This document shows positions 1 through 64,000 of a DNA stretch of 64,000 nt, piece after piece (positions within the stretch are counted from its first letter, which is position 1; each line of letters opens with the position of its first letter). The notes under the pieces were generated by a model, which saw only the letters and a list, made by a program, of their open reading frames with translations, searched no databases and had not been told where the DNA came from. The stretch lies in sequence record PQ471515.1; one strand, given 5' to 3'. The translations under genes and the position numbers were made by a program.

Positions 1-92
1 ACAATTCCACTACCACACACTATGTGCTATCAACCCAGATTATAATACATATAAACTGTACTACATTCTCGCCCTAATATATAGGTACTGAT

Positions 93-278
93 ATGCATAG
101 AGAATACTATATACAATTTGTTAAAGGGAACTACAAACACGCCGTCCCCGTAAACCCCTTAAATTCTAATGACCCAAGTACTATATTCTTGTTCCATGAC
201 GCAATACGTACAGTACTCAATACTAAAGATGAACAGGTGCAGTACGTATTCTTACTATTACTTATATACAGACACTAA
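93..278 (+). CDS. family A small paralog
   Basis: N-term (K/R)EYY motif, hydrophobic C-term, tandem with 4 paralogs. Confidence 0.75.
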   Translation: MHREYYIQFVKGNYKHAVPVNPLNSNDPSTIFLFHDAIRTVLNTKDEQVQYVFLLLLIYRH

Positions 279-283
279 CTAAT

Positions 284-493
284 ATGAATAAAGAACATAA
301 AGAATACTACTCCAAACACCTCAGCCCCTCAGAACAAATGTTTCTAAGGACTACAGCACCTTTAAGTACTGATACTTATTTCGGCAGAGTATGCTACAAT
401 AATTGTATTCAAATGACTTTAAACGCAAACGACAATAATAACAGTACTAACCTGTACTCAGGCATCATAGGTATACTATTTCTATATGAATAA
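284..493 (+). CDS. family A small paralog
   Basis: MNKEHKEYYSKHL start. Confidence 0.8.
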   Translation: MNKEHKEYYSKHLSPSEQMFLRTTAPLSTDTYFGRVCYNNCIQMTLNANDNNNSTNLYSGIIGILFLYE

Positions 494-668
494 AGAACAT
501 AAAGACTTCTATATAAGAAAACTAACATTCGTCCCCGTAAAAATATATAAAGAATGCGACCCAAGATTATACCTATGGCACTTCAATGAGTGCATAAAAG
601 ATTCTATATACCCTAAGAACTATAAAGAACAATTGATCTCAGTACTAACACTAGTACTATCATATTAA
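486..668 (+). CDS. family A small paralog
   Basis: MNKEHKDFYIRKL start. Confidence 0.8.
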   Translation: MNKEHKDFYIRKLTFVPVKIYKECDPRLYLWHFNECIKDSIYPKNYKEQLISVLTLVLSY

Positions 669-681
669 TAGAGATAATACT

Positions 682-873
682 ATGCATAAAGACTATAAAG
701 AGTACTATATAAGTAAACTAAAAGAAAACGAACAAGCATGGGTTAACAATTTAATCCCCCTGGCAATGACTCAATACGAATTTAATATGTGTACAAAGAT
801 TGTTTTAACTAGTAATGATATCTCTAATACGTACTACTTCCTATTAAGAGTACTATATGGTACTTTGAAATAA
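682..873 (+). CDS. family A small paralog
   Basis: KDYKEYYISKL motif. Confidence 0.85.
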   Translation: MHKDYKEYYISKLKENEQAWVNNLIPLAMTQYEFNMCTKIVLTSNDISNTYYFLLRVLYGTLK

Positions 874-884
874 TAAGGTATACT

Positions 885-1091
885 ATGCAGAACATAAAAA
901 ACTATAAAGAGTACTATATAAGTAAACTACCACCGACTGACCAAGCATGGATTAGATCTATAATAGTACTGGCATTTAATAGATATGCATTTAACAGATG
1001 TACCGAGATTGCTATAGACCCTTATAATATTAAAGAGAATGTACAGCATAATCAGTACTACTATATGTTAATGCTTATATATAGGAAGTAA
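885..1091 (+). CDS. family A small paralog
   Basis: KNYKEYYISKL motif, DNA near-identical to start of 682 gene. Confidence 0.85.
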   Translation: MQNIKNYKEYYISKLPPTDQAWIRSIIVLAFNRYAFNRCTEIAIDPYNIKENVQHNQYYYMLMLIYRK

Positions 1092-1398
1092 TTCAACATA
1101 TAGACAGGGGGAAGCTCCGCAGGGAAAGCATTGGACAGGCTTTAACATATGTTATATATGTTAAAATTCAGCCTGGACAAATGCGATCACTAGGATTCTC
1201 CCCAGGCTAAACCCCGTAATCATATGTAGTCATAAGTAATCATATATAAACATTTATATGAGCACCGTAGAATCACAGAATGATTATATATGATTCAGTA
1301 CTGATTAGTATAGACAAGATTACTCAATAATGCTAGGGAAGGATTCAGTACTGCCCCAAAAGTATTCAGTACTGAAGGTGTCGATATCCCACTAAGTA

Positions 1399-1424
1399 GG
1401 CAGAGGAAGTCTGCCGTACTTTTT
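1399..1424 (+). terminator. intrinsic terminator-like hairpin
   Basis: GGCAGA-GGAAG-TCTGCC followed by T-rich tract. Confidence 0.5.
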
Positions 1425-1531
1425 AGTTTCCAAGCTCCTTTTCCATTTTGCAAATTACATCAAATGTAATCAAAAGTAATCACGCAATGATTAGTACTGA
1501 ATTATTACTTTCACCTTAATTTCAATTACCC

Positions 1532-1551
1532 TTTTACCCTTCGGGGTAAAA
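1532..1551. terminator. UUCG hairpin, possibly bidirectional terminator
   Basis: TTTTACCC-TTCG-GGGTAAAA. Confidence 0.45.
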
Positions 1552-1758
1552 TTCCATTACCCCTTGAGGCTCCAGCAAAAAGTTGGTTAGTACTCCATCC
1601 TAAATCTCGATCCTAAAAATTTTGGAGTACCTATGAAATAAAAGTTGGATCTTCGAAAGTTGAAATTTACGTTGGGACGTTTATGATTTGTGGGATATAA
1701 TGATGTTTGTAGTCGAGTAGAGATGAGTATATCAGTACTGAATGGTGAAAGAAAGTTA

Positions 1759-1786
1759 TTGACATTATGATTCAGTACTGTATAAT
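1759..1786 (+). promoter_or_regulatory. sigma70-type promoter with no downstream ORF
   Basis: TTGACA-16 bp-TATAAT followed by GTTCTACAT like the other early promoters. Confidence 0.75.
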
Positions 1787-1791
1787 GTTCT

Positions 1792-2080
1792 ACATAGGGT
1801 GATGAGTTGCTGCGAACAATTCATTTACTCTACCTCCTGTCGTGAGACAGTACAGAAAAGATAGTTCCTCCTGTGGTGGTACATCTTTTTGAACCTCATA
1901 TGAAAATCGTAATAACAGTACTGATATTAACAGAATGGTGTCAGTACTGATTTTAATCTAAAGCATTATGCCACCAGCTTGTGCTGGTGGATTCCCTCTA
2001 ACAGTATTCAGTACTACATGATGGTCTTCATCCTCCTAGGGTAACATAGTGAGGGCTATGATGGCAGTACTGAATACTCC
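1792..2080 (+). ncRNA. candidate structured ncRNA
   Basis: Stems 1803-1823, 1837-1850 (GUGA GNRA loop), 1856-1889, 1971-1990, 2003-2078 downstream of the promoter; no ORF. Confidence 0.4.
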
Positions 2081-2161
2081 CTTTCAAAAGATAGATCTAT
2101 GGTATAGTACTGACGGATTTTGGGTGTAGTTACCCTGGATGGATTTTGGACGTAGATATGT

Positions 2162-2297
2162 CTAGCCCTCCAGAAGTCTGGAAGTAAAGATGGCTATCCA
2201 TCTAGACGGCTAAACGGCTAGATTTCTGGATGGCTAGACGTTTGGACGGCTAAACGGCTAGATGGTTACACGTCTGGAAGTATAGACGGCTAAATCA
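2162..2297. repeat. degenerate 8-bp tandem repeat (consensus about CTRGAYGG)
   Basis: GGCTA at 2192, 2208, 2216, 2232, 2248, 2256, 2288 (all spacings multiples of 8); GACGGCTAAA at 2205, 2245, 2285. Confidence 0.85.
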
Positions 2298-2459
2298 AAA
2301 TTTTATTTTGTTTTTTCCAATAGTTCCCCTACCGCGTGGGGATAGTTTCCCCGCAGTATCTGGAGTTAGATTTTTCTGAATCTGGAATCATTATCTTATA
2401 AACTGGGGGCAATGTCAACGGCCTGGACGGATATTTTTAAAAATTTTTTCAGTACTGAA

Positions 2460-2543
2460 TTTTGGGCGTAACTATGCACCCGGTGGGCTTGAGTCTTTCT
2501 CGACTTGATGGAACTATTATACAGTACTGAAAAAATAAAGCAA
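2460..2543 (-). ncRNA. promoter-driven ORF-less CCCA-NN-GGGTGC element
   Basis: TTGCTT-16-TATAAT on - strand; core GCCCACCGGGTGC 2476-2488. Confidence 0.55.
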
Positions 2544-2577
2544 TACCCTGGAAGCAAAAAAGTTTTAATTAATTTGC

Positions 2578-2660
2578 TTGCTATCCTGGGCCGGACTATG
2601 GTACTATATTTCAGTACTGAGAAAGTGCGTTTACCTGCTAGGGTGCGGGAGTGTATCCTT
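2578..2660 (+). ncRNA. degenerate CCCA-NN-GGGTGC element
   Basis: TTGCTA-18-TACTAT; TAGGGTGCGGGAGTGTATC shared with the 4571 copy. Confidence 0.4.
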
Positions 2661-2675
2661 TTTTTATATCTTGAA

Positions 2676-2759
2676 TTTTGGGCGTAATTCCGCACCCTCT
2701 GGGGTTTCCGCTTTCTCGCGTCTATGTAGTAATTATACGCTTTTTCAGGATCAAGTCAA
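2676..2759 (-). ncRNA. promoter-driven ORF-less CCCA-NN-GGGTGC element
   Basis: TTGACT-16-TATAAT on - strand; core CCCCAGAGGGTGC 2692-2704; TTACGCCCAAAATTC tail shared with the 2460 copy. Confidence 0.55.
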
Positions 2760-3118
2760 TACCTAAAAACAAAATAATTGAAAATAATTTAACGCGTTTA
2801 AACGGCCCGTAAAGCCCTGGAATGATTGGAATGGTGCAAATGTATAGCTTAGGTGTATTAATGCGTTAGAATGCGTCTGAGGCCGTTTTATGGGGTGTAG
2901 TAGTGATTTGGTTGATTCAGTACTGAATAATAGTACTACTATATAGAAAGATAGTTCCCCTGGATGGTTGCAGTACTGAATGATAGTTCCCCTATATAGA
3001 AAGAAAACTATTTTAAAAGTATTTGTAGAAAGTACTTGCAAACTATGTTTAAAGGCGTATAATGTTTTACATCGAGAGCGGGAACACTTCCTGCTACACA
3101 TTACGAGAGATTAAAACG

Positions 3119-3481
3119 ATGGCGACTCAAATCACTAAAATTATTGCTAACCTGGTTAACTTTCGCGACGAGATGAAAGATCTTCCGGCAGAAACGGTAA
3201 AAATTCACATTGCAGCTTATCGGGAACTTATTGCAATGTTACCTCTTAAGCGTGAACAATACGCCGCAACCGTGATGCTTGATGCGATGATCCATAAGAT
3301 GATCGCCAGTGATTTAACGATGGCTTATCAGTACATGGGCGAATTGTTCGCGGTGTATAGTAAACCAGTACCAGGAATGGAAAGTACAGAAGTATTACAC
3401 GGTTTAAATTTAAAACAAGATGCATGGGATAATATGCCTCGTTTCCTGGTATGGGCTGACAGTGGCAAAATTTACGAATAA
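3119..3481 (+). CDS. hypothetical early protein
   Basis: Own promoter, hairpin and RBS; start moved to MATQIT. Confidence 0.85.
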   Translation: MATQITKIIANLVNFRDEMKDLPAETVKIHIAAYRELIAMLPLKREQYAATVMLDAMIHKMIASDLTMAYQYMGELFAVYSKPVPGMESTEVLHGLNLKQDAWDNMPRFLVWADSGKIYE

Positions 3482-3574
3482 GTTTAATAAAGTACTTGCA
3501 AACTATGTTTAATGGCGTATAATGTTTTACATCAGGTGGGGAATAGTTCCCCACTATATAAGAGGATTAAAAAA

Positions 3575-3814
3575 ATGGCTAAATCAAAAATGTTCTTAGG
3601 TCACAAAAACAAAACTCATTGGAATGTAAGCCTTTGGATTAATAACGATGAGTCATTGTACCGGTTGGCTCAGGACTTTATTAACGATAGCACTAATCGC
3701 AATGATGCGGCCCGTCATATGATGTTATTTTTAGAACAGACTGGACAAGATAAAACACCGGACGGATTCAAATATAGCACTACTGCGATCCGTGCTGCAA
3801 TGGTTGGAATGTAA
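3575..3814 (+). CDS. conserved phage hypothetical (HWNVSLWINN), paralog of 5618
   Basis: Promoter and RBS; last ~60 nt nearly identical to the 5618 gene. Confidence 0.9.
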   Translation: MAKSKMFLGHKNKTHWNVSLWINNDESLYRLAQDFINDSTNRNDAARHMMLFLEQTGQDKTPDGFKYSTTAIRAAMVGM

Positions 3815-3899
3815 TAGAATTTATTTAAAGTACTATCATTTTTTGCGATAGTACTTTAAAATAGTGTTTTATTCATACACCAACGATAAGGGCAACAGC

Positions 3900-4166
3900 A
3901 TGAATATTAAGTATTTTGCGACGCGTGAACAAGCTCGGATCGCCGCACGCCAGGACGGGGTAACGTTTAAAGATATGGGCGTACAATCGGAACGTGGTAA
4001 ACGTTGGGCCATTGTAAAGCGTAGTACCGCCAGATCATTACAGTACTGGTTAGCGGCCTTAAAAAGTCCCGATAGTGTATCGCGACGAGTGGTAGAAATA
4101 AAGCTCGACCGAAAGGGCAACCGCGTGACCGTGTACCGTACTAAAAAGATTGCAGTACTTGAATAA
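3900..4166 (+). CDS. hypothetical, paralog of 16705
   Basis: FATRE.ARI.AR and DRKGNRVTVY motifs shared. Confidence 0.85.
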   Translation: MNIKYFATREQARIAARQDGVTFKDMGVQSERGKRWAIVKRSTARSLQYWLAALKSPDSVSRRVVEIKLDRKGNRVTVYRTKKIAVLE

Positions 4167-4253
4167 AAAGTACTTGCAAACTATGTTTAATGGCGTATAA
4201 TGTTTTACATCGAGAGCGGGAACTCTTCCCGCCTATAACCTGGAGTAATAAAA

Positions 4254-4484
4254 ATGACTAATATGTATATGACTGAAGTTAAAACCGTAAAAGATACTAC
4301 CACGAATAAAACTACTTACTTACAGCGGATCTGCGGTGTATGGCAACGTATCAGCAAATCAAAGTACTTTAAATTAACATCATATGCAAACCGTTCGGAT
4401 TCATTCAGTACTGAAATAAAAGGTAATAAAGTACACCAATACGGCACTTATTATTATTATAGCCTGGACGCGATTGCAGTATAA
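4254..4484 (+). CDS. hypothetical early protein
   Basis: Promoter, hairpin, GGAG RBS. Confidence 0.85.
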   Translation: MTNMYMTEVKTVKDTTTNKTTYLQRICGVWQRISKSKYFKLTSYANRSDSFSTEIKGNKVHQYGTYYYYSLDAIAV

Positions 4485-4517
4485 GCAGTTTTTGAAAAAT
4501 ATTTACAATTGCCAGTA

Positions 4518-4600
4518 TTGACTTATTTTGTCAGTACTGGCATAATGTATTCATTGGCAGATAAGCCGTAGCCCATAGGGTGCGGGAGTGTATCTATAGA
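4518..4600 (+). ncRNA. promoter-driven ORF-less CCCA-NN-GGGTGC element
   Basis: TTGACT-17-CATAAT; core GCCCATAGGGTGC 4571-4583. Confidence 0.55.
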
Positions 4601-4614
4601 AAAAGTAGTTTATT

Positions 4615-4690
4615 ACAGTTACAATTGTGCACCCGGTGGGTTAGCTGTTGTCATGGGGTATATTATGCCAGTACTTGATAATGCTGTCAA
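4615..4690 (-). ncRNA. promoter-driven ORF-less CCCA-NN-GGGTGC element, convergent with the previous copy
   Basis: TTGACA-17-CATAAT on - strand; core ACCCACCGGGTGC 4629-4641. Confidence 0.55.
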
Positions 4691-4771
4691 TACTTTTTTT
4701 TACTATTCAGTACTGAAAACTATTTTTAAAAAGTACTTGCAAACTATGTTTAAAGGCGTATAATGTTTTAC

Positions 4772-4846
4772 ATCAGGACGGGGAACGAAATAAGTAACTT
4801 CCCGTTAAGTAGCCCAGGAGTAAGGCACACGAAAAACTCCCCTGAT
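4772..4846 (+). ncRNA. three-way-junction leader/sRNA element, copy 1
   Basis: ATCAGG/CCTGAT closing stem; ACGGG/CCCGT and GGAGT/ACTCC stems; lies between two promoters. Confidence 0.5.
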
Positions 4847-4914
4847 AAAATAGTTTGACAAATGTTTTTAAAAGCGTATAATACTTACATCAACTACTGA
4901 ATGAGGGTTACAAA

Positions 4915-5526
4915 ATGAAAACTATCACTACTACTACTTATGTTATGGCTTTTTCTGAATTGAACGCAGAACAACAAACGTCAGCTATCGAACTGGTTCG
5001 GGAACGTGAAAAAAACTTAAACGATGATTATTTTTCTGAAAGTGAAATTGAATACTATAAAGAAACAGTACTACCGGAATATGGCATTAATGACGCTGAT
5101 TTACGTTTCAGTGGCTTTTGGTCCCAGGGTGACGGTGCATCAATCAGTACTGACCACGTTGACGCAGTGAAGTTTTTACGCAAGGTAAGAGCATTAACTA
5201 AGTATCGCTCAATCCGTCACCTTCTGAATGAAGATGATTTGGCGATGAGTGTAAAGCGTTCTCACTCCCACTACTCGCATGAGAATACTGTAAGCGGGTA
5301 CATTGAATCGGCTTACACTGATTTAACCGCAAAACAAGAAACGTTAGTTAATGAGCTTGAGGAACTACTCACTGAAACTATTCGTGAATTATCCCGCAAG
5401 TTGTACCGTGATTTAGAGAATGCATATGAGGATCAATTCACTACTGAAAACATTACGGCACTGATTGAGGGTAACGAATATCAATTCAATGTCATTGATG
5501 GTGTAGTAGAATCAATCGAATATTAA
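4915..5526 (+). CDS. acidic conserved phage hypothetical protein
   Basis: 203 aa ORF with promoter and GAGG RBS. Confidence 0.9.
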   Translation: MKTITTTTYVMAFSELNAEQQTSAIELVREREKNLNDDYFSESEIEYYKETVLPEYGINDADLRFSGFWSQGDGASISTDHVDAVKFLRKVRALTKYRSIRHLLNEDDLAMSVKRSHSHYSHENTVSGYIESAYTDLTAKQETLVNELEELLTETIRELSRKLYRDLENAYEDQFTTENITALIEGNEYQFNVIDGVVESIEY

Positions 5527-5617
5527 TTTAAAAAGTACTTGCAAACTAAGTTTAAAGGCGTATAATACTTTATATCGAGGCGGGGAGTGGTTCCCCGCTC
5601 AAACGAGGATTAAAAAA

Positions 5618-5857
5618 ATGGCTAGTACTAAAACTTACAACGGACACAAAAACAAAACTCATTGGAATGTTTCCTTATGGATTAATAACGGTGAGTCATT
5701 GTATCGGCTTGCTCAAAGTTGCATCGCACAAAGTAGAACTAAAGATATTGCAGCGGAATGTATGTACCGCAGATTAAAAGCCAACGGTACTACTACAACG
5801 CCGGACGGATTCAAGTATAGCACTACTGCGATCCGTGCTGCAATGGTTGGAATGTAA
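5618..5857 (+). CDS. conserved phage hypothetical (HWNVSLWINN), paralog of 3575
   Basis: Promoter, hairpin, RBS. Confidence 0.9.
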   Translation: MASTKTYNGHKNKTHWNVSLWINNGESLYRLAQSCIAQSRTKDIAAECMYRRLKANGTTTTPDGFKYSTTAIRAAMVGM

Positions 5858-5915
5858 TATTCAGTACTGTAACAATGGCGGGGAATGGTTCCCGCCTTTA
5901 TTGAGGGTTTATCTA

Positions 5916-6176
5916 ATGAGTAAAGTAATTAACTATACAGTACTAAGCAAGTCATTATCTATCAGTCATTGCACCGATGGTTATTGGCTATTTGATGAAA
6001 CGCGTGGAATGAATTTAGCTATGCGTGCAAAAACTGCTGAGGCGGCGTATCTTGAGGCACTGGAATACTACCAGGAACGTTTAACGGAAGTAGAAGAAGA
6101 TTATAAAAGCCTCAAAGCGAAAGTAGATCATTTCGTCGGTCAATTCATCGAGGAAGACGACGACAAACAATATTGA
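5916..6176 (+). CDS. hypothetical, acidic coiled-coil C-terminus
   Basis: GAGG RBS; start moved to MSKVIN. Confidence 0.8.
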   Translation: MSKVINYTVLSKSLSISHCTDGYWLFDETRGMNLAMRAKTAEAAYLEALEYYQERLTEVEEDYKSLKAKVDHFVGQFIEEDDDKQY

Positions 6177-6264
6177 AAAAAAGTACTTGCAATTAGTTTT
6201 CAGTACTGTATAATGGTTTACATCAAAGGGAGAAATGGTTCTCCCTGGTAATGAGGAAAATAAA

Positions 6265-6486
6265 ATGGCTAATATCACTACTCTTTCCCAACTGGAAGCA
6301 CTGGTTAAATCTATGCGGGAACATGCCGACAAAATCGGCGTACAAGATCCAGCCGTTTGCTTCTGCGACGAATTGAATGATGATACCCTGGTAATAGCAG
6401 AAGTCCAGGACGTTTCTAACTATTCCTCGCGTTACACTGGCGGCGTAGCAAATAAAGGTGACTTCTGTTTATACCTTACAAAATAA
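6265..6486 (+). CDS. hypothetical early protein
   Basis: Promoter, hairpin, GAGG RBS. Confidence 0.85.
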   Translation: MANITTLSQLEALVKSMREHADKIGVQDPAVCFCDELNDDTLVIAEVQDVSNYSSRYTGGVANKGDFCLYLTK

Positions 6487-6491
6487 CAACG

Positions 6492-6521
6492 CGGGGAGAT
6501 AATAACTCCCCGTTACTTTTT
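6492..6521 (+). terminator. intrinsic terminator
   Basis: CGGGGAG/CTCCCCG stem then TTACTTTTT. Confidence 0.55.
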
Positions 6522-6539
6522 CAGTACTGAATCATTTAA

Positions 6540-6621
6540 TAGACGGATCTCGGCACCCGGTGGGTTAGTGACTGTTTCGTCTTGATGTAGTAATTATGCC
6601 AGTACTGGATGCACTTGTCAA
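6540..6621 (-). ncRNA. promoter-driven ORF-less CCCA-NN-GGGTGC element
   Basis: TTGACA-17-CATAAT on - strand; core 6553-6565. Confidence 0.55.
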
Positions 6622-6729
6622 CAACTATTTTTCAAATACTTTTTATTAAAATACTTGCAATTAGTTTTTAAACGCGTATAATGTTTTGCATAGGGGGAGC
6701 GGTTCCCCTGGTAACTAAGGAATAAGAAA

Positions 6730-6966
6730 ATGGTCGAACAAATCAAATCAACGTCTTCGAATGTAACGGGAACGGTAGCACACTTTACTAGTGATGAATC
6801 GCGGGGCGTTCCCTATTGTGCTGTACATGTAAACACTGAGGGTAACTACTGGTTTACGGTTTACGGATCTTATTCATTTGGTCGCCCTGGACATCAAAAA
6901 ATTCTGGATAAAGTACAACCAACGGGTAAAAATATCACTGCCGAAATGTTTTATAAAAAATCATAA
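6730..6966 (+). CDS. hypothetical early protein
   Basis: Promoter, hairpin, AAGG RBS. Confidence 0.85.
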   Translation: MVEQIKSTSSNVTGTVAHFTSDESRGVPYCAVHVNTEGNYWFTVYGSYSFGRPGHQKILDKVQPTGKNITAEMFYKKS

Positions 6967-7050
6967 AGTACTTGCAATTAGTTTTTAGTACTGTATAATA
7001 TTTTACATCGCAAGGGGGAGCGGTTCCCCCTGGTAACTAAGGATAATCAA

Positions 7051-7350
7051 ATGAAAATTGCAATCATCGCCCTGGCTTTATCTGTTTCCTCTTTCGCTGT
7101 TAATGCGTCATTAGATGTAAGTAGTGAAAAATTCATTCAGTGCACTGTTGCAATGACCGATGAAAGAACTGGCGAGATTGTATTAAAGGATTTAGAGATC
7201 CAGCCGGAAGCATTTAAAAACGGCCCGTTCCATGAAGAAGACGAAAACGGTAGCACAACAATTTATTATGATGCCAGTACTAAACGCGGTTCGGTCACTG
7301 TTATGGATACTGAGAAAGTAACTCATACTGGCGTTATTAATTGCCGTTGA
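7051..7350 (+). CDS. hypothetical exported protein
   Basis: Signal-peptide-like MKIAIIALALSVSSFAVNA. Confidence 0.85.
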   Translation: MKIAIIALALSVSSFAVNASLDVSSEKFIQCTVAMTDERTGEIVLKDLEIQPEAFKNGPFHEEDENGSTTIYYDASTKRGSVTVMDTEKVTHTGVINCR

Positions 7351-7371
7351 TATATACTACGGGGTAACATC

Positions 7372-7602
7372 ATGACTAAGCGAATTGTTTTACTTAACGA
7401 AAGCAGTACTACACAACTACTTAACGCCGTGCATTATGATATTGAAACGAGCGTTAATCTTATCAGTACTGTAGTACTATTGGACACTGGAAAGGTCGCC
7501 AATGAAAAAGCTATTGCAGGTGTACTAACTGATCTCAAGCCTGGTAGCAGTACACCCATAACGTTAAATGATAAAGTGTTTAATGTTTTAATTACTGAAT
7601 AA
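7372..7602 (+). CDS. hypothetical protein
   Basis: ORF with RBS, followed by terminator. Confidence 0.8.
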   Translation: MTKRIVLLNESSTTQLLNAVHYDIETSVNLISTVVLLDTGKVANEKAIAGVLTDLKPGSSTPITLNDKVFNVLITE

Positions 7603-7608
7603 GTACAT

Positions 7609-7631
7609 AGCCCACCTGGTGGGCTTTTTTG
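7609..7631 (+). terminator. intrinsic terminator
   Basis: AGCCCAC/GTGGGCT stem and T tract. Confidence 0.85.
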
Positions 7632-7719
7632 TTTTTGTAGTATCGTAGTACTGAGATACTTTGAAAATAGTTTTAAAAAAGTAGTTGACATTACCGCAGA
7701 AAAGCGTAGAATGTATTAC

Positions 7720-7778
7720 ATCAAGACGGGGAGCACTAAGTAGACCGCCAGTAAGTCGAACGAAAAACTGGACACGTC
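7720..7778 (+). ncRNA. three-way-junction element, divergent copy in the 5' leader of the H-NS-like gene
   Basis: TAAGTAG linker and AAG-N4-ACGAAAA loop kept; stem is CCAGT/ACTGG. Confidence 0.4.
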
Positions 7779-7835
7779 GAGAAAACTTTGATACACTAAT
7801 AAACGTAAACTAAACTTTAATTGAGGATTTATAAA

Positions 7836-8318
7836 ATGGCTAATGTAAAATCATTCATCAAAGCACTGGTAGCAAATGAAACTAACGTCGCGGCAGAGAT
7901 CCTGGCTGAACTGGATAACGATACCATGAAAGCGGTACGCAATAATTTTAACATCGCGTACAGTACTGCGAAAGAACTACAAGCAAATAAAGCGGCAGAA
8001 ATTGAAGCGGCAAAGGCGGCCCGTGAAGCAGAACTACAAGCAACAATCGAAAGTATTCAGGCGGCAGTAGTTGGATTGGATCTGGAAGTAGTTACAGAGA
8101 TGGCACAAAAAGCCCTGGCGGTTAAGTATGGGGAAGACAAGCCAGAAGTAAAAGCCAAAAAATGGATTCAGGAACGCGTAGCGGTAGTACTGGACAACGG
8201 GGAAGAATATCTGATTCCGGTGCGTGGTAACTGCATTGCGGTAGTACTGGATGCGATTAACTCCAGTGGTATGACTCGCGAGGAATGGATCGAAGCTCAT
8301 CGCAAAGTTGAAGCATAA
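7836..8318 (+). CDS. H-NS-like protein with altered DNA-binding motif
   Basis: Coiled-coil N-term; C-term DNGEEYLIPVRGNCIAVVLDAINSSGMTREEWI aligns by eye with H-NS [33 protein letters not shown]. Confidence 0.55.
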   Translation: MANVKSFIKALVANETNVAAEILAELDNDTMKAVRNNFNIAYSTAKELQANKAAEIEAAKAAREAELQATIESIQAAVVGLDLEVVTEMAQKALAVKYGEDKPEVKAKKWIQERVAVVLDNGEEYLIPVRGNCIAVVLDAINSSGMTREEWIEAHRKVEA

Positions 8319-8339
8319 CAATTAAAGTACTGAATCACT

Positions 8340-8365
8340 AGCCCACTGTATAAGTGGGCTTTTTT
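8340..8365 (+). terminator. intrinsic terminator
   Basis: AGCCCACT/AGTGGGCT stem and T tract. Confidence 0.85.
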
Positions 8366-8602
8366 GTGTTTATCGTTTACCAGTCCACCAGCACCGCCTA
8401 GAATCGATTCTAACGCATTAAACTGATTATCTGATGCATTGCCCTAGCTGGTGGCGTTAAGGCTGTAAGAACGCGATTGAGTGCGTTTAAAGTATTTTGC
8501 AAAAAGTAATAAAAAGTACTTGCACGATTAAGAGATTAGCGTATAATGTTTTACATCGAGAGGGGGAAACGGTTCTCCTTCCAAATCAAAGGAATCAAAA
8601 CA

Positions 8603-8830
8603 ATGGCTATCGTAATCACTCGCGTATCTGGTACAGTTGGCAATGCGGCAGTAGTAGCGGTTATCACTAACAAGAAAGGTGCGGAACTACATTTTGCAAT
8701 GTATAACTGGTCAGTTGATGAGTTTGGTCAGTACGCTAGTGTAGAATACATTGAAACCTATCAAGTGCCGTCGATTAGTTTAACTGATTTGGGCGTTGAG
8801 CGTATCCTTTGCCTGGATGAATTAAATTAA
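8603..8830 (+). CDS. hypothetical early protein
   Basis: Promoter, hairpin, AGGA RBS. Confidence 0.85.
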   Translation: MAIVITRVSGTVGNAAVVAVITNKKGAELHFAMYNWSVDEFGQYASVEYIETYQVPSISLTDLGVERILCLDELN

Positions 8831-8916
8831 AAAAGTACTTGCAAAGTAAATCAGATAAAGTATAATACATTACATCAAGGGGAGAAATGGTTCTCCCTGA
8901 TAATGAGGAAACTAAT

Positions 8917-9060
8917 ATGAAAACTTGTCAATGTGGTAAAAAATCTATTACTGGTTTAAAGCGGGGCGTTGCTCTTTGTCAGTACCATTATAATTTACAA
9001 GTATGGGGTAAAGAATGGGCCGACCAGGTGGAAGCTGTAAAGAAAGCAAAAAGTAAGTAA
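8917..9060 (+). CDS. small putative zinc-finger protein (CxC...CxxH), 47 aa
   Basis: Own promoter, GAGG RBS; below ORF-track cutoff. Confidence 0.75.
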   Translation: MKTCQCGKKSITGLKRGVALCQYHYNLQVWGKEWADQVEAVKKAKSK

Positions 9061-9142
9061 AAATATTATCACAGTACTATTGACATAGTTTGATAGTACT
9101 GGCATAATAGATTTTATCAAGACAACTAAGAGGAAACAAAAA

Positions 9143-9355
9143 ATGGCTATCATTACTAAAATCAAAGTAAGTAAAACCCTGGTTAAACTTGAACAAGTGA
9201 AAGCAGGTTATAAAGTATCTTGGTGCGGTATGTATCGGATGTTCGCAGATATTGATGAAGCAATCAATTATTACAGCGACACGGTTAAAAACTTTGTTCG
9301 TGCTGATGTGGTTATGGCAGTGGCAACGCACAAAGCAGCGAAAGAAAGTAAGTAA
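9143..9355 (+). CDS. hypothetical early protein
   Basis: Class-II promoter and RBS. Confidence 0.85.
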   Translation: MAIITKIKVSKTLVKLEQVKAGYKVSWCGMYRMFADIDEAINYYSDTVKNFVRADVVMAVATHKAAKESK

Positions 9356-9444
9356 AAATATTATCACAGTACTATTGACATAGTTTGATAGTACTGGCAT
9401 AATAGATTTTATCAAGACAACATATTAATTTAAGGAATACAAAA

Positions 9445-9768
9445 ATGGCTAAAACTATCATTAACACCGTTTCCCTGGCTGCAATCCGTGCAATCAATGT
9501 TGACGGTAAACGTTGGACTGATTCATATGGCAATACTTATCATTCTTGTCATGTAAGCGTTGAACTGGATAACGGTTTGAATGATCTGGCGGTTGAATCA
9601 TTTACTTATGGCTATGAAGATGCATATCAACAAACGGCGTTATCTCTCTTAAAGGAATCAGTAGACGGGCTTAATACTGATGAAACCTCCCTTACTCGTG
9701 TGTGCAATGATCTTAATATCCCGTTGCATTGTACTGTACAGAATGTTAAACGCAAAAAAGATCTTTAA
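9445..9768 (+). CDS. hypothetical, paralog of 16286
   Basis: RWTD..GNTYHSC motif shared. Confidence 0.9.
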   Translation: MAKTIINTVSLAAIRAINVDGKRWTDSYGNTYHSCHVSVELDNGLNDLAVESFTYGYEDAYQQTALSLLKESVDGLNTDETSLTRVCNDLNIPLHCTVQNVKRKKDL

Positions 9769-9848
9769 TTAGCTTTACTTTATGCAGATACTTTGATATA
9801 GTGTCTGCATAGGGGAAAGAAATTAAATTAACTTAAGAGGATCGTATA

Positions 9849-10118
9849 ATGAAAAATATCAGTACTTTAATCGATGCAGGTACTCATGTTCGTCGGTCTA
9901 TGGTTGCAACCAGTACTACAAAACAAGTAGCGAGCGGTTATCTTGTATTTGTGCACGATGGTAAACTCCTGGAACGTTCAATCAATTTTGATGTTAAAAA
10001 CAATTGCCGTTTTATTATCTTTAAGCGTGAGCAATATAAAATTGATTTACCAGCAAAGCCCATTAGTGGGGCGTACAACGTGCAATCATTGTTTGAACGT
10101 CAACCATACACCTATTAA
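9849..10118 (+). CDS. hypothetical early protein
   Basis: Promoter and GAGG RBS. Confidence 0.8.
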   Translation: MKNISTLIDAGTHVRRSMVATSTTKQVASGYLVFVHDGKLLERSINFDVKNNCRFIIFKREQYKIDLPAKPISGAYNVQSLFERQPYTY

Positions 10119-10169
10119 TCAAAACATCGTTAGCGGTCGATTCAGGCCGCTTATATTGGGGATTATACC

Positions 10170-10442
10170 ATGAACGTTAATCAAGTACTGAATGAGATCG
10201 AAAGCATCATTAAACCGATGAAGCGTACTGATGCTATGTTAACACCGGAAGAATGCCGCCTTTATGAGCGTTACAGCGTCGAACAAGTCCAGGCAATGGC
10301 TATGGCTACCCCAGCCGTTAAACCGCCTGAGAATGCGTTACAGGACGTTACAGGGGATTATATCATCAATCCAGTACTAGGGAAGATGGCTGCAATCACC
10401 GAAGATCAACAAGACTACTTAAGCCAGTACTTAAAAGGTTAA
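10170..10442 (+). CDS. hypothetical protein
   Basis: ORF with GGGG RBS. Confidence 0.8.
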   Translation: MNVNQVLNEIESIIKPMKRTDAMLTPEECRLYERYSVEQVQAMAMATPAVKPPENALQDVTGDYIINPVLGKMAAITEDQQDYLSQYLKG

Positions 10443-10447
10443 TTAAT

Positions 10448-10657
10448 ATGCTTACTGTACAGGATAAGATCGACATCTTAAAGGTTAATATGTATGTGAT
10501 TGATGCCGTACCTGGTAAAGTATTTGCATACGATGACACTACTGTAAGCGATTTCTACTATAGCCAGGCCGTGGGGGATCTTTCTGTACAGTCGGTTATT
10601 GAAAACGTAGTTAATGCAGCGTATGAGCATTTACTTTCAAATAGTACTTGCAATTAG
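10448..10657 (+). CDS. hypothetical protein
   Basis: ORF directly after the previous gene. Confidence 0.75.
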   Translation: MLTVQDKIDILKVNMYVIDAVPGKVFAYDDTTVSDFYYSQAVGDLSVQSVIENVVNAAYEHLLSNSTCN

Positions 10658-10726
10658 TTTTTAAACGCGTATAATGTTTTACATGAAGGGGAGAAATGAT
10701 TCTCCCCACTAATTAAGGAATATGAA

Positions 10727-10873
10727 ATGAAAGCATCAAAAAAGAGTACTAACAAGAAAGCACGTTCAACCTTAGATGGGGTATTCCCTTTACGTTTTGT
10801 TGATGAAGTAGTTTCCTACCCGCCGGGCCTTACTCCTGAGATGGTAGAAAGTTTGCGTAAATCTAAAAAATAG
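10727..10873 (+). CDS. small basic protein, 48 aa
   Basis: Own promoter, hairpin, AAGG RBS. Confidence 0.7.
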   Translation: MKASKKSTNKKARSTLDGVFPLRFVDEVVSYPPGLTPEMVESLRKSKK

Positions 10874-10955
10874 TACTTGCAATTAGTTTTTAGTACTGTA
10901 TAATAGTTTACATGAAGGGGAAAACGTTCCCCTTACACCTAACGAGGAAAGTATA

Positions 10956-11207
10956 ATGGAAACAATTTTAATCAAAGACACTGCTACTACTGTAACTTAT
11001 GATAATGATTGCATTATCCCAGGGACTGAGTACGGCGAACGTGTACCCGTTCAAGTAGAGATTGATACCACATACATCGACAAGGCTGACCAGTGTATCA
11101 CTATTGTAATTGGTGAATATCGTTTTCTACCAGAAGAGATCCAAAAATGGCAGAATATGATTGACCGTGCGAAATTAGTCGCACAAAGTTTAAAATACAA
11201 AGTTTAA
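10956..11207 (+). CDS. hypothetical early protein
   Basis: Promoter, hairpin, GAGG RBS. Confidence 0.85.
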   Translation: METILIKDTATTVTYDNDCIIPGTEYGERVPVQVEIDTTYIDKADQCITIVIGEYRFLPEEIQKWQNMIDRAKLVAQSLKYKV

Positions 11208-11293
11208 AATAATACTTGCAATTAGTTTTTAAACGCGTATAATGTTTTACATGAAGGGGAGAAATGATTCTCCCCAATAACAGGAGAAACAAA

Positions 11294-11446
11294 ATGAAAC
11301 AATACAACGCTCGGTTTGATGTTACTATCGGTAACGGCAAAGGTCAATTCTCTTTCAGTACTCGCAAAAGTTATACAGAAAACTTCCTGCGTAATTGTGC
11401 ACTGACCGCCGCACAAATTAAACATTACTTTCAGGCTAAAAAATGA
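11294..11446 (+). CDS. small hypothetical protein
   Basis: Promoter, AGGAG RBS; start at MKQYNA. Confidence 0.75.
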   Translation: MKQYNARFDVTIGNGKGQFSFSTRKSYTENFLRNCALTAAQIKHYFQAKK

Positions 11447-11532
11447 AATCATTAGCTTATTACAGTTCGGCCCTGGTCGGTGCATTGATCGCGGCGTTGT
11501 TAGTAACCTATCTATTCTTTATGGTGATTTAA
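11443..11532 (+). CDS. 29 aa single-pass membrane peptide
   Basis: ATGA overlap; hydrophobic MKSLAYYSSALVGALIAALLVTYLFFMVI. Confidence 0.55.
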   Translation: MKSLAYYSSALVGALIAALLVTYLFFMVI

Positions 11533-11676
11533 ATGAATCCAACAGGTTTAAACTATAAAAGTTGTTCGGCGTTTACGAAAGCAAATAAAGCGAATGCACG
11601 TAAAGCGAAAGTAAAGGAGTACATCAAGCAAGGCATGACGCGAAAGGCGGCGATTCTAAAAGCTAAAAATAAATGA
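11533..11676 (+). CDS. small Lys/Ala-rich basic protein, 47 aa
   Basis: Abuts the previous stop codon. Confidence 0.6.
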   Translation: MNPTGLNYKSCSAFTKANKANARKAKVKEYIKQGMTRKAAILKAKNK

Positions 11677-11685
11677 AAAAAGTGG

Positions 11686-11770
11686 TTGACTCCGGTCAGC
11701 CATTTTGCTATTATATATTCATTGAGAGATAGCTCACTAGCCCACAGGGTGCATAAGTGTATCTATTATA
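11686..11770 (+). ncRNA. promoter-driven ORF-less CCCA-NN-GGGTGC element
   Basis: TTGACT-17-TATTAT; core 11740-11752; near-identical to the 18623 copy. Confidence 0.6.
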
Positions 11771-11886
11771 TAAGTATTGAGTACTGAAAACTATTTTAAA
11801 AAAGTACTTGCAAACTATCTCAATAAGCGTATAATGTTTTACATCGAAAGGGGAAACGGTTTCCCCTGGTAATAAGGAAACAAATC

Positions 11887-12228
11887 ATGACTATCTCAAT
11901 TGCTCAATCTAACTTTGAAAACGAAATCATCGCCCAGGCACTGCGTTTAAATGATGGTCGGGCCGAAATTAATTACGGTTTAAATTCAGGCGGTTGTGAA
12001 AAATATCAGTACTTTGTAACGGCTGATGGCGGTGTCCTGGGTATCAATACAGTTATTGTAAACATCCAAAAAATTAATTTCAATGATCCAGACGATAGCC
12101 AGTTTTACATCACTGGCGTAGACGTGAACTATGAGGATGACTCACTAACTGATGATCACACTGGCGAGCGGTTAGAAAGTGCATACGGTGAAGATGATTA
12201 TCAGTCCGGTCCAGAAGATTTCGAATAA
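11887..12228 (+). CDS. acidic conserved phage hypothetical protein
   Basis: Promoter, hairpin, RBS. Confidence 0.9.
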   Translation: MTISIAQSNFENEIIAQALRLNDGRAEINYGLNSGGCEKYQYFVTADGGVLGINTVIVNIQKINFNDPDDSQFYITGVDVNYEDDSLTDDHTGERLESAYGEDDYQSGPEDFE

Positions 12229-12324
12229 TATAAAAAAATAGTTTGACAATAGATTATAGTACTGTATAATAGTTTACATCAAGGGGAGAAAAACTTCTCC
12301 CCACTAACAGAGAGAGAAAACAAA

Positions 12325-12537: not shown

Positions 12538-12620
12538 AAATATTATCACAGTACTATTGACATAGTTTGATAGTACTGACATAATAACTTTTATCAACTA
12601 CACTACTAAGGAATTAAAAA

Positions 12621-61847: not shown

Positions 61848-61877
61848 GACATACCATAAGTTTATGATATAATGTAA

Positions 61878-61909
61878 GGTGACAGCAGAATATGTTGTCA
61901 CCTTTTTTT
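61878..61909 (+). terminator. intrinsic terminator
   Basis: GGTGACAGCA/TGTTGTCACC stem and T7. Confidence 0.75.
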
Positions 61910-62440
61910 AATCCTGAAAGGTTCCATATGGAAATGATTGAAGCCTAATCCACTCGAAAAGTAGAGGGTAGATGAGTAGTCCTTTCAGTACGAACAGCAA
62001 ATGAAACCCGTTAGATGATGGCATAGTTTGAACCACTCACGGCAATGCGGCTGTATAAAGAACTCCAATAGGATAAAGAGAGTTCCTCGATAGACATATA
62101 AGGATCGCACCTTACCAATTATCTAAGGGAGATTTCATGAGAAATTTGCGGTCGTAATTTATACAAAATAGTTGCGTCCAAAATTCGTGAAATCAAATAC
62201 AAGTACTGGTCATATGGTATTTGTATTATGTGTCGGGATGTTTAAGACCGACGACCGTTGCTACAAGAACCGCGATAGAGAGAAACAGAGCAACCCGCTT
62301 TCGCCTCGTAAGAGAATTCGTGATATGAACTATGTGAAGGCCACCAGCGTCAAACTTTTTTGTTCTTTCCCCTGCGGGGGGATGAAATATGCTCAAGCAA
62401 ACCCCGTCAATATTAATTAAAACAAATCATAGTACTTTCG
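61910..62440. ncRNA. candidate large structured ncRNA region
   Basis: About 530 nt with no credible CDS, GC higher than flanks, several stems. Confidence 0.35.
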
Positions 62441-62469
62441 TTGAATTAGACATGCGAAGCGTGTATAAT
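62441..62469 (+). promoter_or_regulatory. sigma70-type promoter
   Basis: TTGAAT-17-TATAAT. Confidence 0.55.
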
Positions 62470-62527
62470 TCGACTGGTGTTGATGAAGTCAACGCCATGT
62501 ACAGTCATTGATGTTTCCATAGGAATA

Positions 62528-63073
62528 ATGATGTCATTTATTAAAAAATCTAAAAGCGTCACTTATAAAACACTAGAATTTGTTGATTCAGACAATCAGA
62601 ACCAAGACCAAGAGAATTTTACTGGTTTTGTTGTGATTAAAGAAAAGGGATGTATTTCGTACATCAAAGAGTTGCAGTGCGGTTTTGAATTAACTTCCAT
62701 TAAGTTATTCCCAACCAAGAAGCCTACAATTCTTAAAGCTCGTTATGGGAACTACTACGAAGAGCGTTATAGTAATAATCTAATCAGTGCGAAAGCACAT
62801 ATCGTCAATGGAGAACTAGAAGGAGAATATAGAAAATTCAACCCACAAGGAAAATGTGTTTGGGTTAAATACTTCAATTCAGGAAATGATGTAACATCAG
62901 AAATTATTGAGTTTTTAGGTTTAACATGTACCCTTGAAACTCTTCATGATTACAAATTTAATACTGAAGAAGAGTTTAATCTGATGATGCGTTATGGATC
63001 ACATTTTAAATTTTTATATGAATACAACATTGACAGTAGTACTTTTGATGACATAGTACTTAACTGTCTATAA
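62528..63073 (+). CDS. MORN-variant repeat protein with family-C-like tail
   Basis: NGELEGEYRKFNPQGK repeat pattern; NTEEEFNLMMRYG; AGGA RBS. Confidence 0.75.
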   Translation: MMSFIKKSKSVTYKTLEFVDSDNQNQDQENFTGFVVIKEKGCISYIKELQCGFELTSIKLFPTKKPTILKARYGNYYEERYSNNLISAKAHIVNGELEGEYRKFNPQGKCVWVKYFNSGNDVTSEIIEFLGLTCTLETLHDYKFNTEEEFNLMMRYGSHFKFLYEYNIDSSTFDDIVLNCL

Positions 63074-63089
63074 TCAAAGGAAATTATGT

Positions 63090-63614
63090 ATGTCGAAGAA
63101 GGATGCTTCGAAGAAAAAACAATCAGTACATTTCAGTACTGGAAAAGATAACTGGACTACTCCAAAGGATTTCTTTGAAGATTTGGATGAACTCTGGGAA
63201 TTTACACTAGATGCAGCATGTGTTAAAGAAACAGCATTGTGTGATAATTTCTTTACACCAGAAGATAATTCACTTGAACAGGACTGGGGAAACAATATCG
63301 TGTGGCTCAACCCACCGTACAGTGATTTGAAAACGTGGTTATCTAAGGCAGTTGATGCATATAACAAAGGTGCTACAGTACTGATTCTCGTACCATCAAG
63401 AACTGATACTATTGCGTTCCAGGACTATGCGTCTAAGTTATGCGACTGTATTTGTTTTATAAAAGGTCGCTTAAAGTTCGGTATCCCTGAAGAACCAGAT
63501 AAAAAGACGGATAGTGCTCCATTCCCTAGTTGTTTAATAGTACTGGATAAGTATTTGACTCCAGCTAAAATCAACTATCTTAAATCTATTGGTCAGGTGA
63601 TGAAGAACATATGA
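63090..63614 (+). CDS. phage DNA N6-adenine methyltransferase (Dam-like family)
   Basis: DNWTTP, FTLDAAC, WLNPPYS, LVPSRTDT, IKGRLKF, SAPFPS motifs. Confidence 0.9.
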   Translation: MSKKDASKKKQSVHFSTGKDNWTTPKDFFEDLDELWEFTLDAACVKETALCDNFFTPEDNSLEQDWGNNIVWLNPPYSDLKTWLSKAVDAYNKGATVLILVPSRTDTIAFQDYASKLCDCICFIKGRLKFGIPEEPDKKTDSAPFPSCLIVLDKYLTPAKINYLKSIGQVMKNI

Positions 63615-64000
63615 AAGAAACATGCGTAGTGACATTCGGAAGAATTAACCCAGTACATCGTGGTCATGGTTTAGTATTTGAAAAAGCTCAAGCACTACAA
63701 GAACAGTACAATGCGGATTTGAAAATATTCCTTAGCACCAGTACTGATGCCGTCAAAAACCCATTACCTCCTGAACTGAAAATGTACTATACAGAAGGAT
63801 TTTACCCATCTGTACAAGAAAATATCTATACAGAAGATAATCTGTTTGATATAATGAGAGAACTGGATGGAAAGTACTTAGATGTTCTTTTCATATGTGG
63901 TTCAGACAGACTTGAACCATTCCAAAAAACGCTTGACACGTACAATGGGAAGTTATATAATTTTTGTTCAATCAAGGCAGTTCAAGCTGGAATTGATCGA
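63611..64000 (+). CDS. HxGH-type (cytidylyltransferase-like) nucleotidyltransferase, cut by window end
   Basis: TFGRINPVHRGH and ICGSDR motifs. Confidence 0.8.
   Translation, partial: MKETCVVTFGRINPVHRGHGLVFEKAQALQEQYNADLKIFLSTSTDAVKNPLPPELKMYYTEGFYPSVQENIYTEDNLFDIMRELDGKYLDVLFICGSDRLEPFQKTLDTYNGKLYNFCSIKAVQAGIDR

Follow-up and report, generated by a model that had tools for sequence, protein, structure and literature searches.

Phages separate their own DNA from that of the host by base modification, as in T4, or by a protein shell, as in the nucleus-forming phages, and avoidance of restriction sites is exemplified by the absence of GATC in Staphylococcus phage K. In Bacillus phage SPO1, the phage-encoded protein TF1 prefers phage over host DNA; its preferred sites overlap strong early promoters, which it represses, in a terminal redundancy with the genes for host takeover. 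Cyanobacteria possess highly iterated palindromes such as HIP1 (GCGATCGC; PMC4390886, PMC5861425, PMC13756078), whose function has been open for thirty years, and the scattered palindromes of 12-14 bp bound by SlmA (SBS; PMC3020112), Noc (NBS) and MatP (matS) allow a dimeric reader to mark a whole domain. Here, we describe a signal comparable to HIP1 in a tractable virulent coliphage, namely the palindrome AGTACT with the full consensus TTCAGTACTGAA. The DNA under study (hereafter the window, 64,000 nucleotides) corresponds exactly to bases 1-64000 of Escherichia phage Turkey3 (PQ471515.1, 361,208 bp), which affiliates with PBECO4, 121Q and phAPEC6 in the genus Asteriusvirus of the Rak2-like jumbo myoviruses. 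Every gene annotated in the window lies on the + strand, and nearly all are deposited as hypothetical. For the Rak2-like group, the signal raises the question by what means a jumbo phage whose DNA has ordinary bases keeps it apart from host DNA.

An earlier note on this DNA, drawn from its letters alone, had likened the motif to HIP1, and the analogy is apt. As in HIP1, a short palindrome is over-represented by one to two orders of magnitude, it is found in non-coding DNA and in every frame of coding DNA under selection that goes beyond codon usage, and it is lineage-specific and co-occurs with orphan DNA methyltransferases. Unlike HIP1, it is carried by a virulent phage of 361 kb instead of a cellular genome, the word is a different one and methylation of its sites is putative. 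Besides, the Turkey3 sites have no quasi-periodic spacing (coefficient of variation, CV, 0.91), a subset of them is fixed in early promoters and at the boundary of the terminal repeat, and the rest of the genome is purged of palindromes, with GCGC being absent. The genome layout and the proposed logic are those of SPO1 and TF1, although TF1 recognises hydroxymethyluracil and not an iterated word, so that the likeness is one of possible mechanism and not of family; no homologue of TF1 or HU came to light, although no search aimed at one was made. Compared with SBS, NBS and matS, which count tens of sites per several megabases, Turkey3 has one core site per 370 bp. Avoidance of the kind seen in phage K is also present (GCGC 0 vs 357 expected, 24 palindromic hexamers at zero), but AGTACT, at 8 times its expectation, has the opposite sign and cannot be explained by avoidance. 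What Turkey3 offers beyond HIP1 are sites at constant positions in some 40 early promoters, clustering at one genome end that has been mapped, two motif-free blocks that serve as natural controls, and close relatives with and without the trait. In full-text searches and in the papers on CBB, RaK2, phAPEC6, Sharanji and fEgEco12, a coverage that is incomplete so that an earlier report is possible, we found no description of the AGTACT motif or of the GCGC gap, and likewise no data on methylation, binding or expression for the motif.

Enrichment, consensus and distribution of AGTACT

Words were counted in the whole Turkey3 genome, assembled from eight pieces, and compared with order-0, order-1 and maximal-order Markov models, 100 dinucleotide-preserving shuffles, synonymous-codon shuffles within genes and permutations of codon order. 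In the window, GTAC occurs 627 times vs about 200 under the order-0 and order-1 models, and the Markov-corrected score that the earlier note had called for places it at the top of all 4-mers (z = 16.7 at maximal order). AGTACT reaches 264 copies, compared with 18.3 +/- 4.4 in the dinucleotide-preserving shuffles (largest value 32) and with about 0.33/kb expected from composition (about 3.1/kb for GTAC); the extended forms CAGTACTG and TCAGTACTGA are present 62 and 16 times, respectively. Genome-wide, the counts are 2694 vs 1177 expected for GTAC, 981 vs 122 for AGTACT (8.0-fold, 2.7/kb), 226 vs 3.8 for CAGTACTG (60-fold), 56 vs 0.4 for TCAGTACTGA (about 140-fold) and 21 vs 0.04 for TTCAGTACTGAA. 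Among the 4096 hexamers, CAGTAC, GTACTG and AGTACT take the first three ranks of over-representation, and the palindrome attains the excess over composition of at least about 15-fold that we associate with a HIP1-type word. The Markov models and the shuffles exclude a dinucleotide artefact. GTAC, which the note had listed, is indeed over-represented, but mainly through the excess of AGTACT and CAGTACTG. The note had also counted 12 AGTACT in 1297-2111, which is exact, and 14 GTAC in 35401-36120; the latter count is right as well, but the region belongs to an AGTACT-free block with a different, strand-specific GTACA variant (see below).

The excess in coding DNA does not follow from the encoded proteins. 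For the frame tests, gene coordinates were taken from our own open reading frame (ORF) calls, which match the deposited annotation closely in the part of the window used for comparison. As the note had proposed, all reading frames carry the motif, with roughly balanced phases in the genes of the window for both GTAC (177/155/173) and AGTACT (60/43/67). Synonymous-codon shuffles of the same genes yield 334 +/- 12 GTAC and 52 +/- 6 AGTACT, compared with 512 and 170 observed (z = 19.7 for AGTACT), and permutation of codon order gives z-scores of 23-32 (30.9 for AGTACT). In the same vein, AGTACT exceeds its synonymous shuffles by about 3.5-4 times in all seven genome regions tested, early and late and on both strands, including the early, replication, head and tail regions and a minus-strand array of paralogues. 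Frame balance, together with the synonymous shuffles and the codon permutations, excludes a codon or dipeptide artefact both for the window and for the seven regions of the genome. Non-coding DNA is not spared, as the density in the window is 9.2/kb there vs 3.15/kb in coding DNA. Like HIP1, the word is thus present in all frames and in non-coding DNA beyond what codon usage would give, and neither of the outcomes held by the note to refute it, loss of the enrichment after codon- or dinucleotide-preserving shuffles or absence from intergenic DNA, occurs. Since the enrichment in coding DNA survives both the frame and the codon tests, these results support that (C)AGTACT(G) is held by selection acting on the DNA itself.

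The selected word is a graded, two-fold symmetric site of 8-12 bp. Around the 981 copies, C is found at position -1 in 45% and G at position +1 in 47%, compared with 17-19% expected, and both G before and C after AGTACT are avoided. Both flanks are present together in 226 cases vs 206 expected under independence, which indicates two independent half-sites. The preference is retained in the 685 coding sites outside the repeat described below (44-46%) and is therefore not a promoter effect, while non-coding sites additionally gain T at -3/-4 and A at +3/+4. Words that keep a single AGTAC half are enriched about 2.2-fold, and such graded enrichment of near-cognates is as expected for a binding-energy landscape. 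Being palindromic, the motif reads identically on either strand, and its half-site variants are strand-balanced in most 10 kb bins, with only the block at 30.0-39.1 kb being polar. A polar motif of the Chi or KOPS type is contradicted by both properties, and the Chi-like signal considered in the note does not fit a palindrome.

Outside the repeat, AGTACT is scattered at 2.5/kb with a flat profile around gene starts and stops. The gaps between sites are near-Poisson, with a near-exponential distribution (CV 0.91), which is not the quasi-periodic spacing of a HIP1-type word, and no helical or long-range periodicity was detected genome-wide beyond promoter pairs 20-23 bp apart.

Comparison with relatives shows that the number of sites is better conserved than their positions. 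A 45 kb alignment of Turkey3 and PBECO4 (86.5% identity) contains 152 and 145 AGTACT sites, of which 115 or 124 are shared according to two counting methods. AGTACT is kept in 82% of cases vs 22-71% for thirteen words of the same composition, and its one-off neighbours have turned into AGTACT in 5.3% vs 0-3.1% in the controls; as for HIP1, sites are thus both conserved and regained above control words. With the more distant Yersinia phage fHe-Yen9-04 (28.5 kb of syntenic late genes, 72% identity), 51 and 52 sites are found, of which only 15 are shared. A conserved number of sites combined with positional turnover suggests weak selection on many sites, or on their number, and not on essential loci. 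Together with frame balance, codon shuffles and symmetric flanks, this retention and gain relative to controls and the conserved site number bear out the view of the note that selection is on the DNA and not on codons.

Among relatives, each sampled as a single stretch of 24-50 kb, the trait is specific to one phage clade and depends neither on the host nor on base composition. AGTACT is found at 6-15 times its expectation in Turkey3, PBECO4, RaK2, GAP32, XbC2 and fHe-Yen9-04, which represent the genera Asteriusvirus, Alcyoneusvirus, Mimasvirus and Eneladusvirus and infect Enterobacterales (one Mimasvirus record lists Xanthomonas as host). It is at 0-0.6 times expectation, with normal GCGC, in Vibrio phage 2.275.O, PA5oct and Atu_ph07; the capsid protein of the Vibrio phage is 79% identical to that of Turkey3, which is as close as that of RaK2. 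Coliphage JLBYU50 (37.5% G+C) has no AGTACT excess either (GTAC 0.82, GCGC 1.76-fold). A general property of low-G+C coliphages or of the host is excluded by JLBYU50 and by the relatives from Vibrio, Pseudomonas and Agrobacterium.

The excess of AGTACT is accompanied by a purge of other palindromes. GCGC has 0 copies vs 357 expected in 361 kb, 24 of the 64 palindromic hexamers are absent (median observed/expected 0.42), GATC is under-represented (0.52) and AGTACT (8.0) is the only large outlier among palindromic hexamers; GTGCAC and GCAC/GTGC are mildly enriched. Turkey3 thus has 981 ScaI and 2694 RsaI sites and no HhaI site, and the zero-copy hexamers include the KpnI, PstI, BamHI, SalI, XhoI, SacI, NcoI and SphI sites, a profile that is relevant to the mapping or engineering of therapy-candidate phages of this group. 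GCGC is also at 0 in the stretches of 40-50 kb sampled from five further genomes of the four motif-positive genera (30-53 expected, the Turkey3 sample included). AGTACT excess and GCGC gap always occur together, as six genomes from four genera have both and four controls have neither, and the co-occurrence of motif, GCGC gap and methyltransferase gene (see below) rests on one clade and one evolutionary event. In 100 kb of E. coli K-12, AGTACT occurs 6 times (0.06/kb), about 45 times more rarely than in the phage, and GCGC 715 times (7.15/kb), being the most over-represented 4-base palindrome of the first 50 kb. AGTACT and GCGC are the words that differ most strongly between phage and host DNA.

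Positioned sites in the early region and AGTACT-free blocks

A subset of the sites is not scattered but placed. Phage fEgEco12, which is 96-98% identical to the window where compared, has a direct terminal repeat of 20,993 bp confirmed by PhageTerm and digestion (PMC13070987). By homology, the corresponding repeat of Turkey3, whose record was deposited as circular with a single copy of the ~21 kb repeat, would span 1395..22363. This early-gene region contains 138 AGTACT (6.6/kb) and consists of small genes, each with an upstream host-type (sigma-70-type) promoter. Two placements recur in these promoters: immediately 5' of the -35 box with a one-base overlap (AGTACTTGCAA), and immediately 5' of the -10 box (AGTACTGTATAAT or AGTACTGGCATAAT), AGTACT then starting 27 nt and 7-8 nt upstream of the -10 hexamer, respectively. 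On the + strand, 13 promoters have the upstream site, 26 the downstream site and 10 both, nearly all inside the repeat; the 13 with the upstream site (type A) all lie within 3-17 kb. Where both sites are present, they are 20-22 bp apart, and pairs 20-23 bp apart are about 3-fold over-represented genome-wide as the sole peak of spacing. In the repeat, 28 of the 31 intergenic regions with a -10-like hexamer carry AGTACT, compared with 4 of 15 intergenic regions elsewhere in the window; the earlier statement that the motif lies inside most promoter spacers therefore holds for the early promoters of the repeat and not for the rest of the window. A palindrome fixed at the -35 and -10 boxes of many promoters of the same temporal class is what an operator of a dimeric repressor would look like.

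Examples are a perfect promoter on the + strand at 1759..1786 (TTGACA-16-TATAAT), in which TTCAGTACTG fills the spacer beside the -10 box, a type A promoter at 3031..3063 (+ strand), where AGTACT overlaps the first base of the -35 box (AGTACTTGCAA) and is followed after 16 nt by TATAAT, and a dual-site promoter at 6182..6214 (+ strand) with AGTACT at 6182 (5' of -35) and 6202 (5' of -10), 20 bp apart. The repeat is also marked at its left boundary. Three near-perfect sites at 1294..1376 (TTCAGTACTGAt at 1294, TTCAGTACTGcc with its AGTACT core at 1347, and TTCAGTACTGAA at 1365) have their cores 98, 48 and 27 bp outside the boundary. Just inside it, 17 AGTACT sites at 1493..3036 occupy an ORF-free leader (no annotated gene in 1092-3061), and several of them match 11 or all 12 bases of TTCAGTACTGAA. 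A search of positions 1-5000 against Rfam at E <= 0.1 gave no structured-RNA match in this leader. The mapped left end itself, at 1395, falls outside any motif copy, and the right end of the repeat has a single site 130 bp away. A small hairpin followed by a T-run (1399-1415) stands exactly at the left repeat end.

The promoter cassette with AGTACT at 3020-3100 (AAAAGTACTTGCAAACT...GCGTATAATG) is found at 89% identity in Justusliebigvirus and Phapecoctavirus phages, which lack the genome-wide motif (counterpart at 11920-12075 in the compared sequence), and JLBYU50 and Turkey3 have one early promoter cassette in common. Sequence identity of this kind suggests that promoter-gene cassettes are exchanged between phage families. 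Good matches to promoters of the AGTACTGGCATAAT type at 4675, 6606 and 2528 (- strand) face leftwards, opposite to all genes, and adjoin a repeated GC-rich element (GCACCCGGTGGG) for which Rfam gave no match; they may drive antisense or small RNAs.

Beyond the repeat, the window is divided into stretches with and without the motif. From 39128 to 64000, packed genes contain 100 scattered AGTACT sites (4.0/kb), almost all in coding sequence. A 5.7 kb stretch at 22233..27941, which begins 130 bp before the right repeat end and contains an array of paralogous genes of about 70 codons, is free of AGTACT and has no clear GTAC excess. The other AGTACT-free block (30006..39127, 9.1 kb) contains instead a strand-specific GTACA/AGTACAG variant on the + strand. 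There, GTAC is followed by A in 74 of 87 copies, GTACT occurs once vs 8 expected, AGTACAG reaches 21 copies vs 0.6 expected and AGTACA is spread across all three frames (17/19/18). This GTACA pattern is kept in the homologous block of PBECO4 at about 80% identity. Both blocks may represent modules that arose elsewhere or be subject to another regime.

Candidate readers and competing explanations

The motif is probably a signal that is read by a phage protein. More precisely, we consider (C)AGTACT(G) to be the site of a two-fold symmetric, phage-encoded reader of duplex DNA, a tentative reading to which we give a probability of about 0.4. That such a protein binds the motif, which one it may be and what its binding would do are inferred; the reading fits the symmetric and independent half-sites, the graded near-cognates, the wider footprint in non-coding DNA, the operator-like placement, the stable number of sites despite turnover of positions and the restriction to one clade. 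The strong extended sites at -35, -10 and the repeat boundary would bind a dimer that competes with RNA polymerase, which would make them operators that time or shut off early transcription. At the approximately 850 weaker core sites, about one per 400 bp through all genes, number would matter and position would not; a reader on these scattered sites would coat, organise or mark the phage chromosome and so distinguish it from host DNA. A recognition site for a phage protein had already been put forward in the note, and it is the most likely reading given the clade restriction and the absence of the motif from an unrelated coliphage, but no reader was identified in our scans. Among the candidates listed at that time, a nucleoid or genome-marking protein fits best, a methylase-marked self signal is possible (see below), and a primase is a poor fit for a palindrome of 8-12 bp.

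Several observations weigh against a symmetric phage reader. Beyond the early region, the motif has no higher density in non-coding than in coding DNA, so that the promoter and scatter layers might have different causes. The AGTACT-free blocks (22.2-27.9 and 30.0-39.1 kb) are not accounted for by a symmetric reader, and the strand-specific GTACA variant is at odds with a symmetric dimer. Individual sites are only moderately better conserved than control words, and the link between motif and clade amounts to a single phylogenetic event. No recognisable DNA-binding domain was found in 20 candidate early or regulatory ORFs, i.e. ten of the larger ORFs of the terminal repeat (Pfam and PHROGs) and ten ORFs around the phage sigma factor and the rI.-1-like locus (Pfam). 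Finally, a conserved orphan adenine methyltransferase could itself be the reader. One of the scanned ORFs (Turkey3 112853-113293), a neighbour of the rI.-1-like gene, codes for a DUF5856 protein that resembles ferritin (Dps-like); it is possibly a non-specific DNA-coating protein, which would give no sequence specificity.

The methyltransferase leads to the main rival explanation, which is possible though less probable. In it, a DNA methyltransferase of the phage, likeliest the PF05869 (Dam-type) N6-adenine enzyme, would act on the motif as GTAC or AGTACT, and the mark instead of a bound protein would carry the function, as suspected for HIP1, by protecting the sites and perhaps by signalling self. 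Its predicted gene (63090..63614, + strand), deposited as hypothetical, is a candidate motif modifier; it is syntenic with a cytidylyltransferase gene, is present in every motif-positive genus examined and had no counterpart in the PA5oct group at a cut-off of E <= 1e-25, an association that is phylogenetically confounded. In a variant of this explanation, methylation would be a replication-coupled switch of early promoters, like Dam sites in E. coli and phage P1; clusters of the motif and a gene for an adenine methyltransferase that may act on it are both present. In a genome purged of palindromes, the 981 exposed ScaI-type sites would put the DNA at risk if they were not protected, and the level of GATC, the usual Dam target (0.52), argues that GATC is not the protected word of the PF05869 enzyme. 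HIP1 provides a precedent, as it is a palindrome containing the sites of two orphan methyltransferases (PMC4390886, PMC13756078), and restriction results for RaK2 are consistent with methylated DNA (PMC3622015). However, digestion of fEgEco12 DNA followed the predicted pattern for each of the ten enzymes used, a set in which ScaI and RsaI were not included (PMC13070987). Protection accounts for tolerance of the sites and not for an 8- to 60-fold excess, so that the mark would in turn require a reader. At 8-12 bp, the selected motif is also wider than usual methyltransferase specificity, and we found no solved relative of the PF05869 enzyme. The N6_N4_Mtase of the Yersinia phage was rejected as a common factor because it has no counterpart at the syntenic place in Turkey3. 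Turkey3 also encodes an orphan, DNMT3-like C5 cytosine methyltransferase (281036-281896), all 286 residues of which align with the catalytic domain of DNMT3A/3B (E = 1e-23), whereas the bacterial enzymes M.HhaI and M.HaeIII align less well. Its presence agrees with the report of CpG methylation in RaK2 (PMC3622015).

The placement and turnover of the sites bear on the other alternatives. That a DNA-processing enzyme (the terminase or its small subunit, a type II topoisomerase, a nicking enzyme or the primase), as opposed to a binding protein, prefers the motif appears unlikely to us. Dense perfect sites surround the mapped boundary of the terminal repeat, the phage has genes for T4-type topoisomerase subunits, a primase and a large terminase, uniform scatter suits an activity exerted everywhere on the genome, and cleavage of A|GTAC|T by a topoisomerase would yield a symmetric 4-base stagger. 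Nevertheless, the mapped end and the nearly site-free right end do not coincide with the motif, and fixed placement at -35 and -10 in about 40 promoters is unexpected of such an enzyme. Besides, known primases recognise trinucleotides and known topoisomerase II sites are loosely defined. A functionless product of biased mutation or repair, as proposed for words of very-short-patch repair and for HIP1, is less probable still. It would also result in a raised gain of AGTACT from one-off neighbours, and it agrees with the free turnover of positions between genera, but it leaves existing sites being kept better than control words, the strong extended sites fixed at promoters and repeat boundary, and two motif-free blocks in the same genome as unexpected features. 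Indeed, transition neighbours are not depleted (AGTATT/AATACT at 1.14-1.30 times and AGCACT/AGTGCT at 1.6 times expectation), and the differences between Turkey3 and PBECO4 at gained or lost sites comprise all types of substitution, with AGTTCT as the commonest partner; a repair bias of the very-short-patch type finds no support on these grounds and was rejected. Reading by a protein of the Enterobacterales host, such as another regulator or SlmA, in which case phage DNA would block cell division, seems very improbable. All motif-positive phages infect Enterobacterales, apart from the Xanthomonas record in Mimasvirus, but JLBYU50, with the same host and similar G+C, lacks the motif, as does the Vibrio relative although Vibrio also has SlmA. 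The SlmA site GTGAGTACTCAC has an AGTACT core, and its 12 bp palindrome needs G, T, purine, A and G at positions 1-5, with a pyrimidine completing each half (PMC3020112). At position 3, the phage sites have C in 45% and G in 9%, with purines depleted, and GTRAGYRCTYAC has zero matches in 361 kb. The flanks thus contradict the published specificity (PMC3020112) and an SlmA-binding sequence was rejected.

Returning to a symmetric reader encoded by the phage, the opposite behaviour of AGTACT and GCGC might be extended to a two-word code that separates self from host without base replacement, through saturation with the former and absence of the latter. We regard this as doubtful. If true, phage enzymes could act on host DNA via GCGC, for instance a nuclease destroying the chromosome, and the AGTACT reader could confine protection, transcription control or packaging to the DNA of the phage.

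Other sequence features of the window and genome

Iteron-like repeats (GACGGCTAAACGGCTAGA and related) are found at 2173-2340, i.e. 780-945 bp inside the terminal repeat, and match sequences near the record ends of unrelated phages, namely the T5-like Vibrio phage pVp-1, Aeromonas phage AhSzq-1, Klebsiella phage KPV811, Vibrio phage Pontus and several Rak2-like phages. They may belong to an origin or to an element that accompanies genome ends. Genome-wide, the E. coli Chi sequence GCTGGTGG has 23 copies on the + strand and 12 on the - strand, compared with 1.3 expected per strand. In the repeat, the nine + strand copies are located at 1982, 8446, 13064, 14524, 15424, 17783, 19192, 20769 and 20993, and the - strand has copies at 1970 and 8384; a hairpin at 1970-1989 is formed by both orientations.

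TATTTA and TAAATA are strongly avoided in the window, with 9 copies each vs 45 and 30, respectively, under the maximal Markov model. This fits an exclusion from early DNA of the ATAAATA late-promoter motif reported for Rak2-like phages. Finally, unannotated small ORFs at 93-278, 284-493 and 486-668 are paralogous to the annotated genes at 682-873 and 885-1091. All of these small paralogues start with a MNKEHK.../MHKDYKEYY-like sequence, and AGTACT lies inside their common K-E-Y-Y codons.

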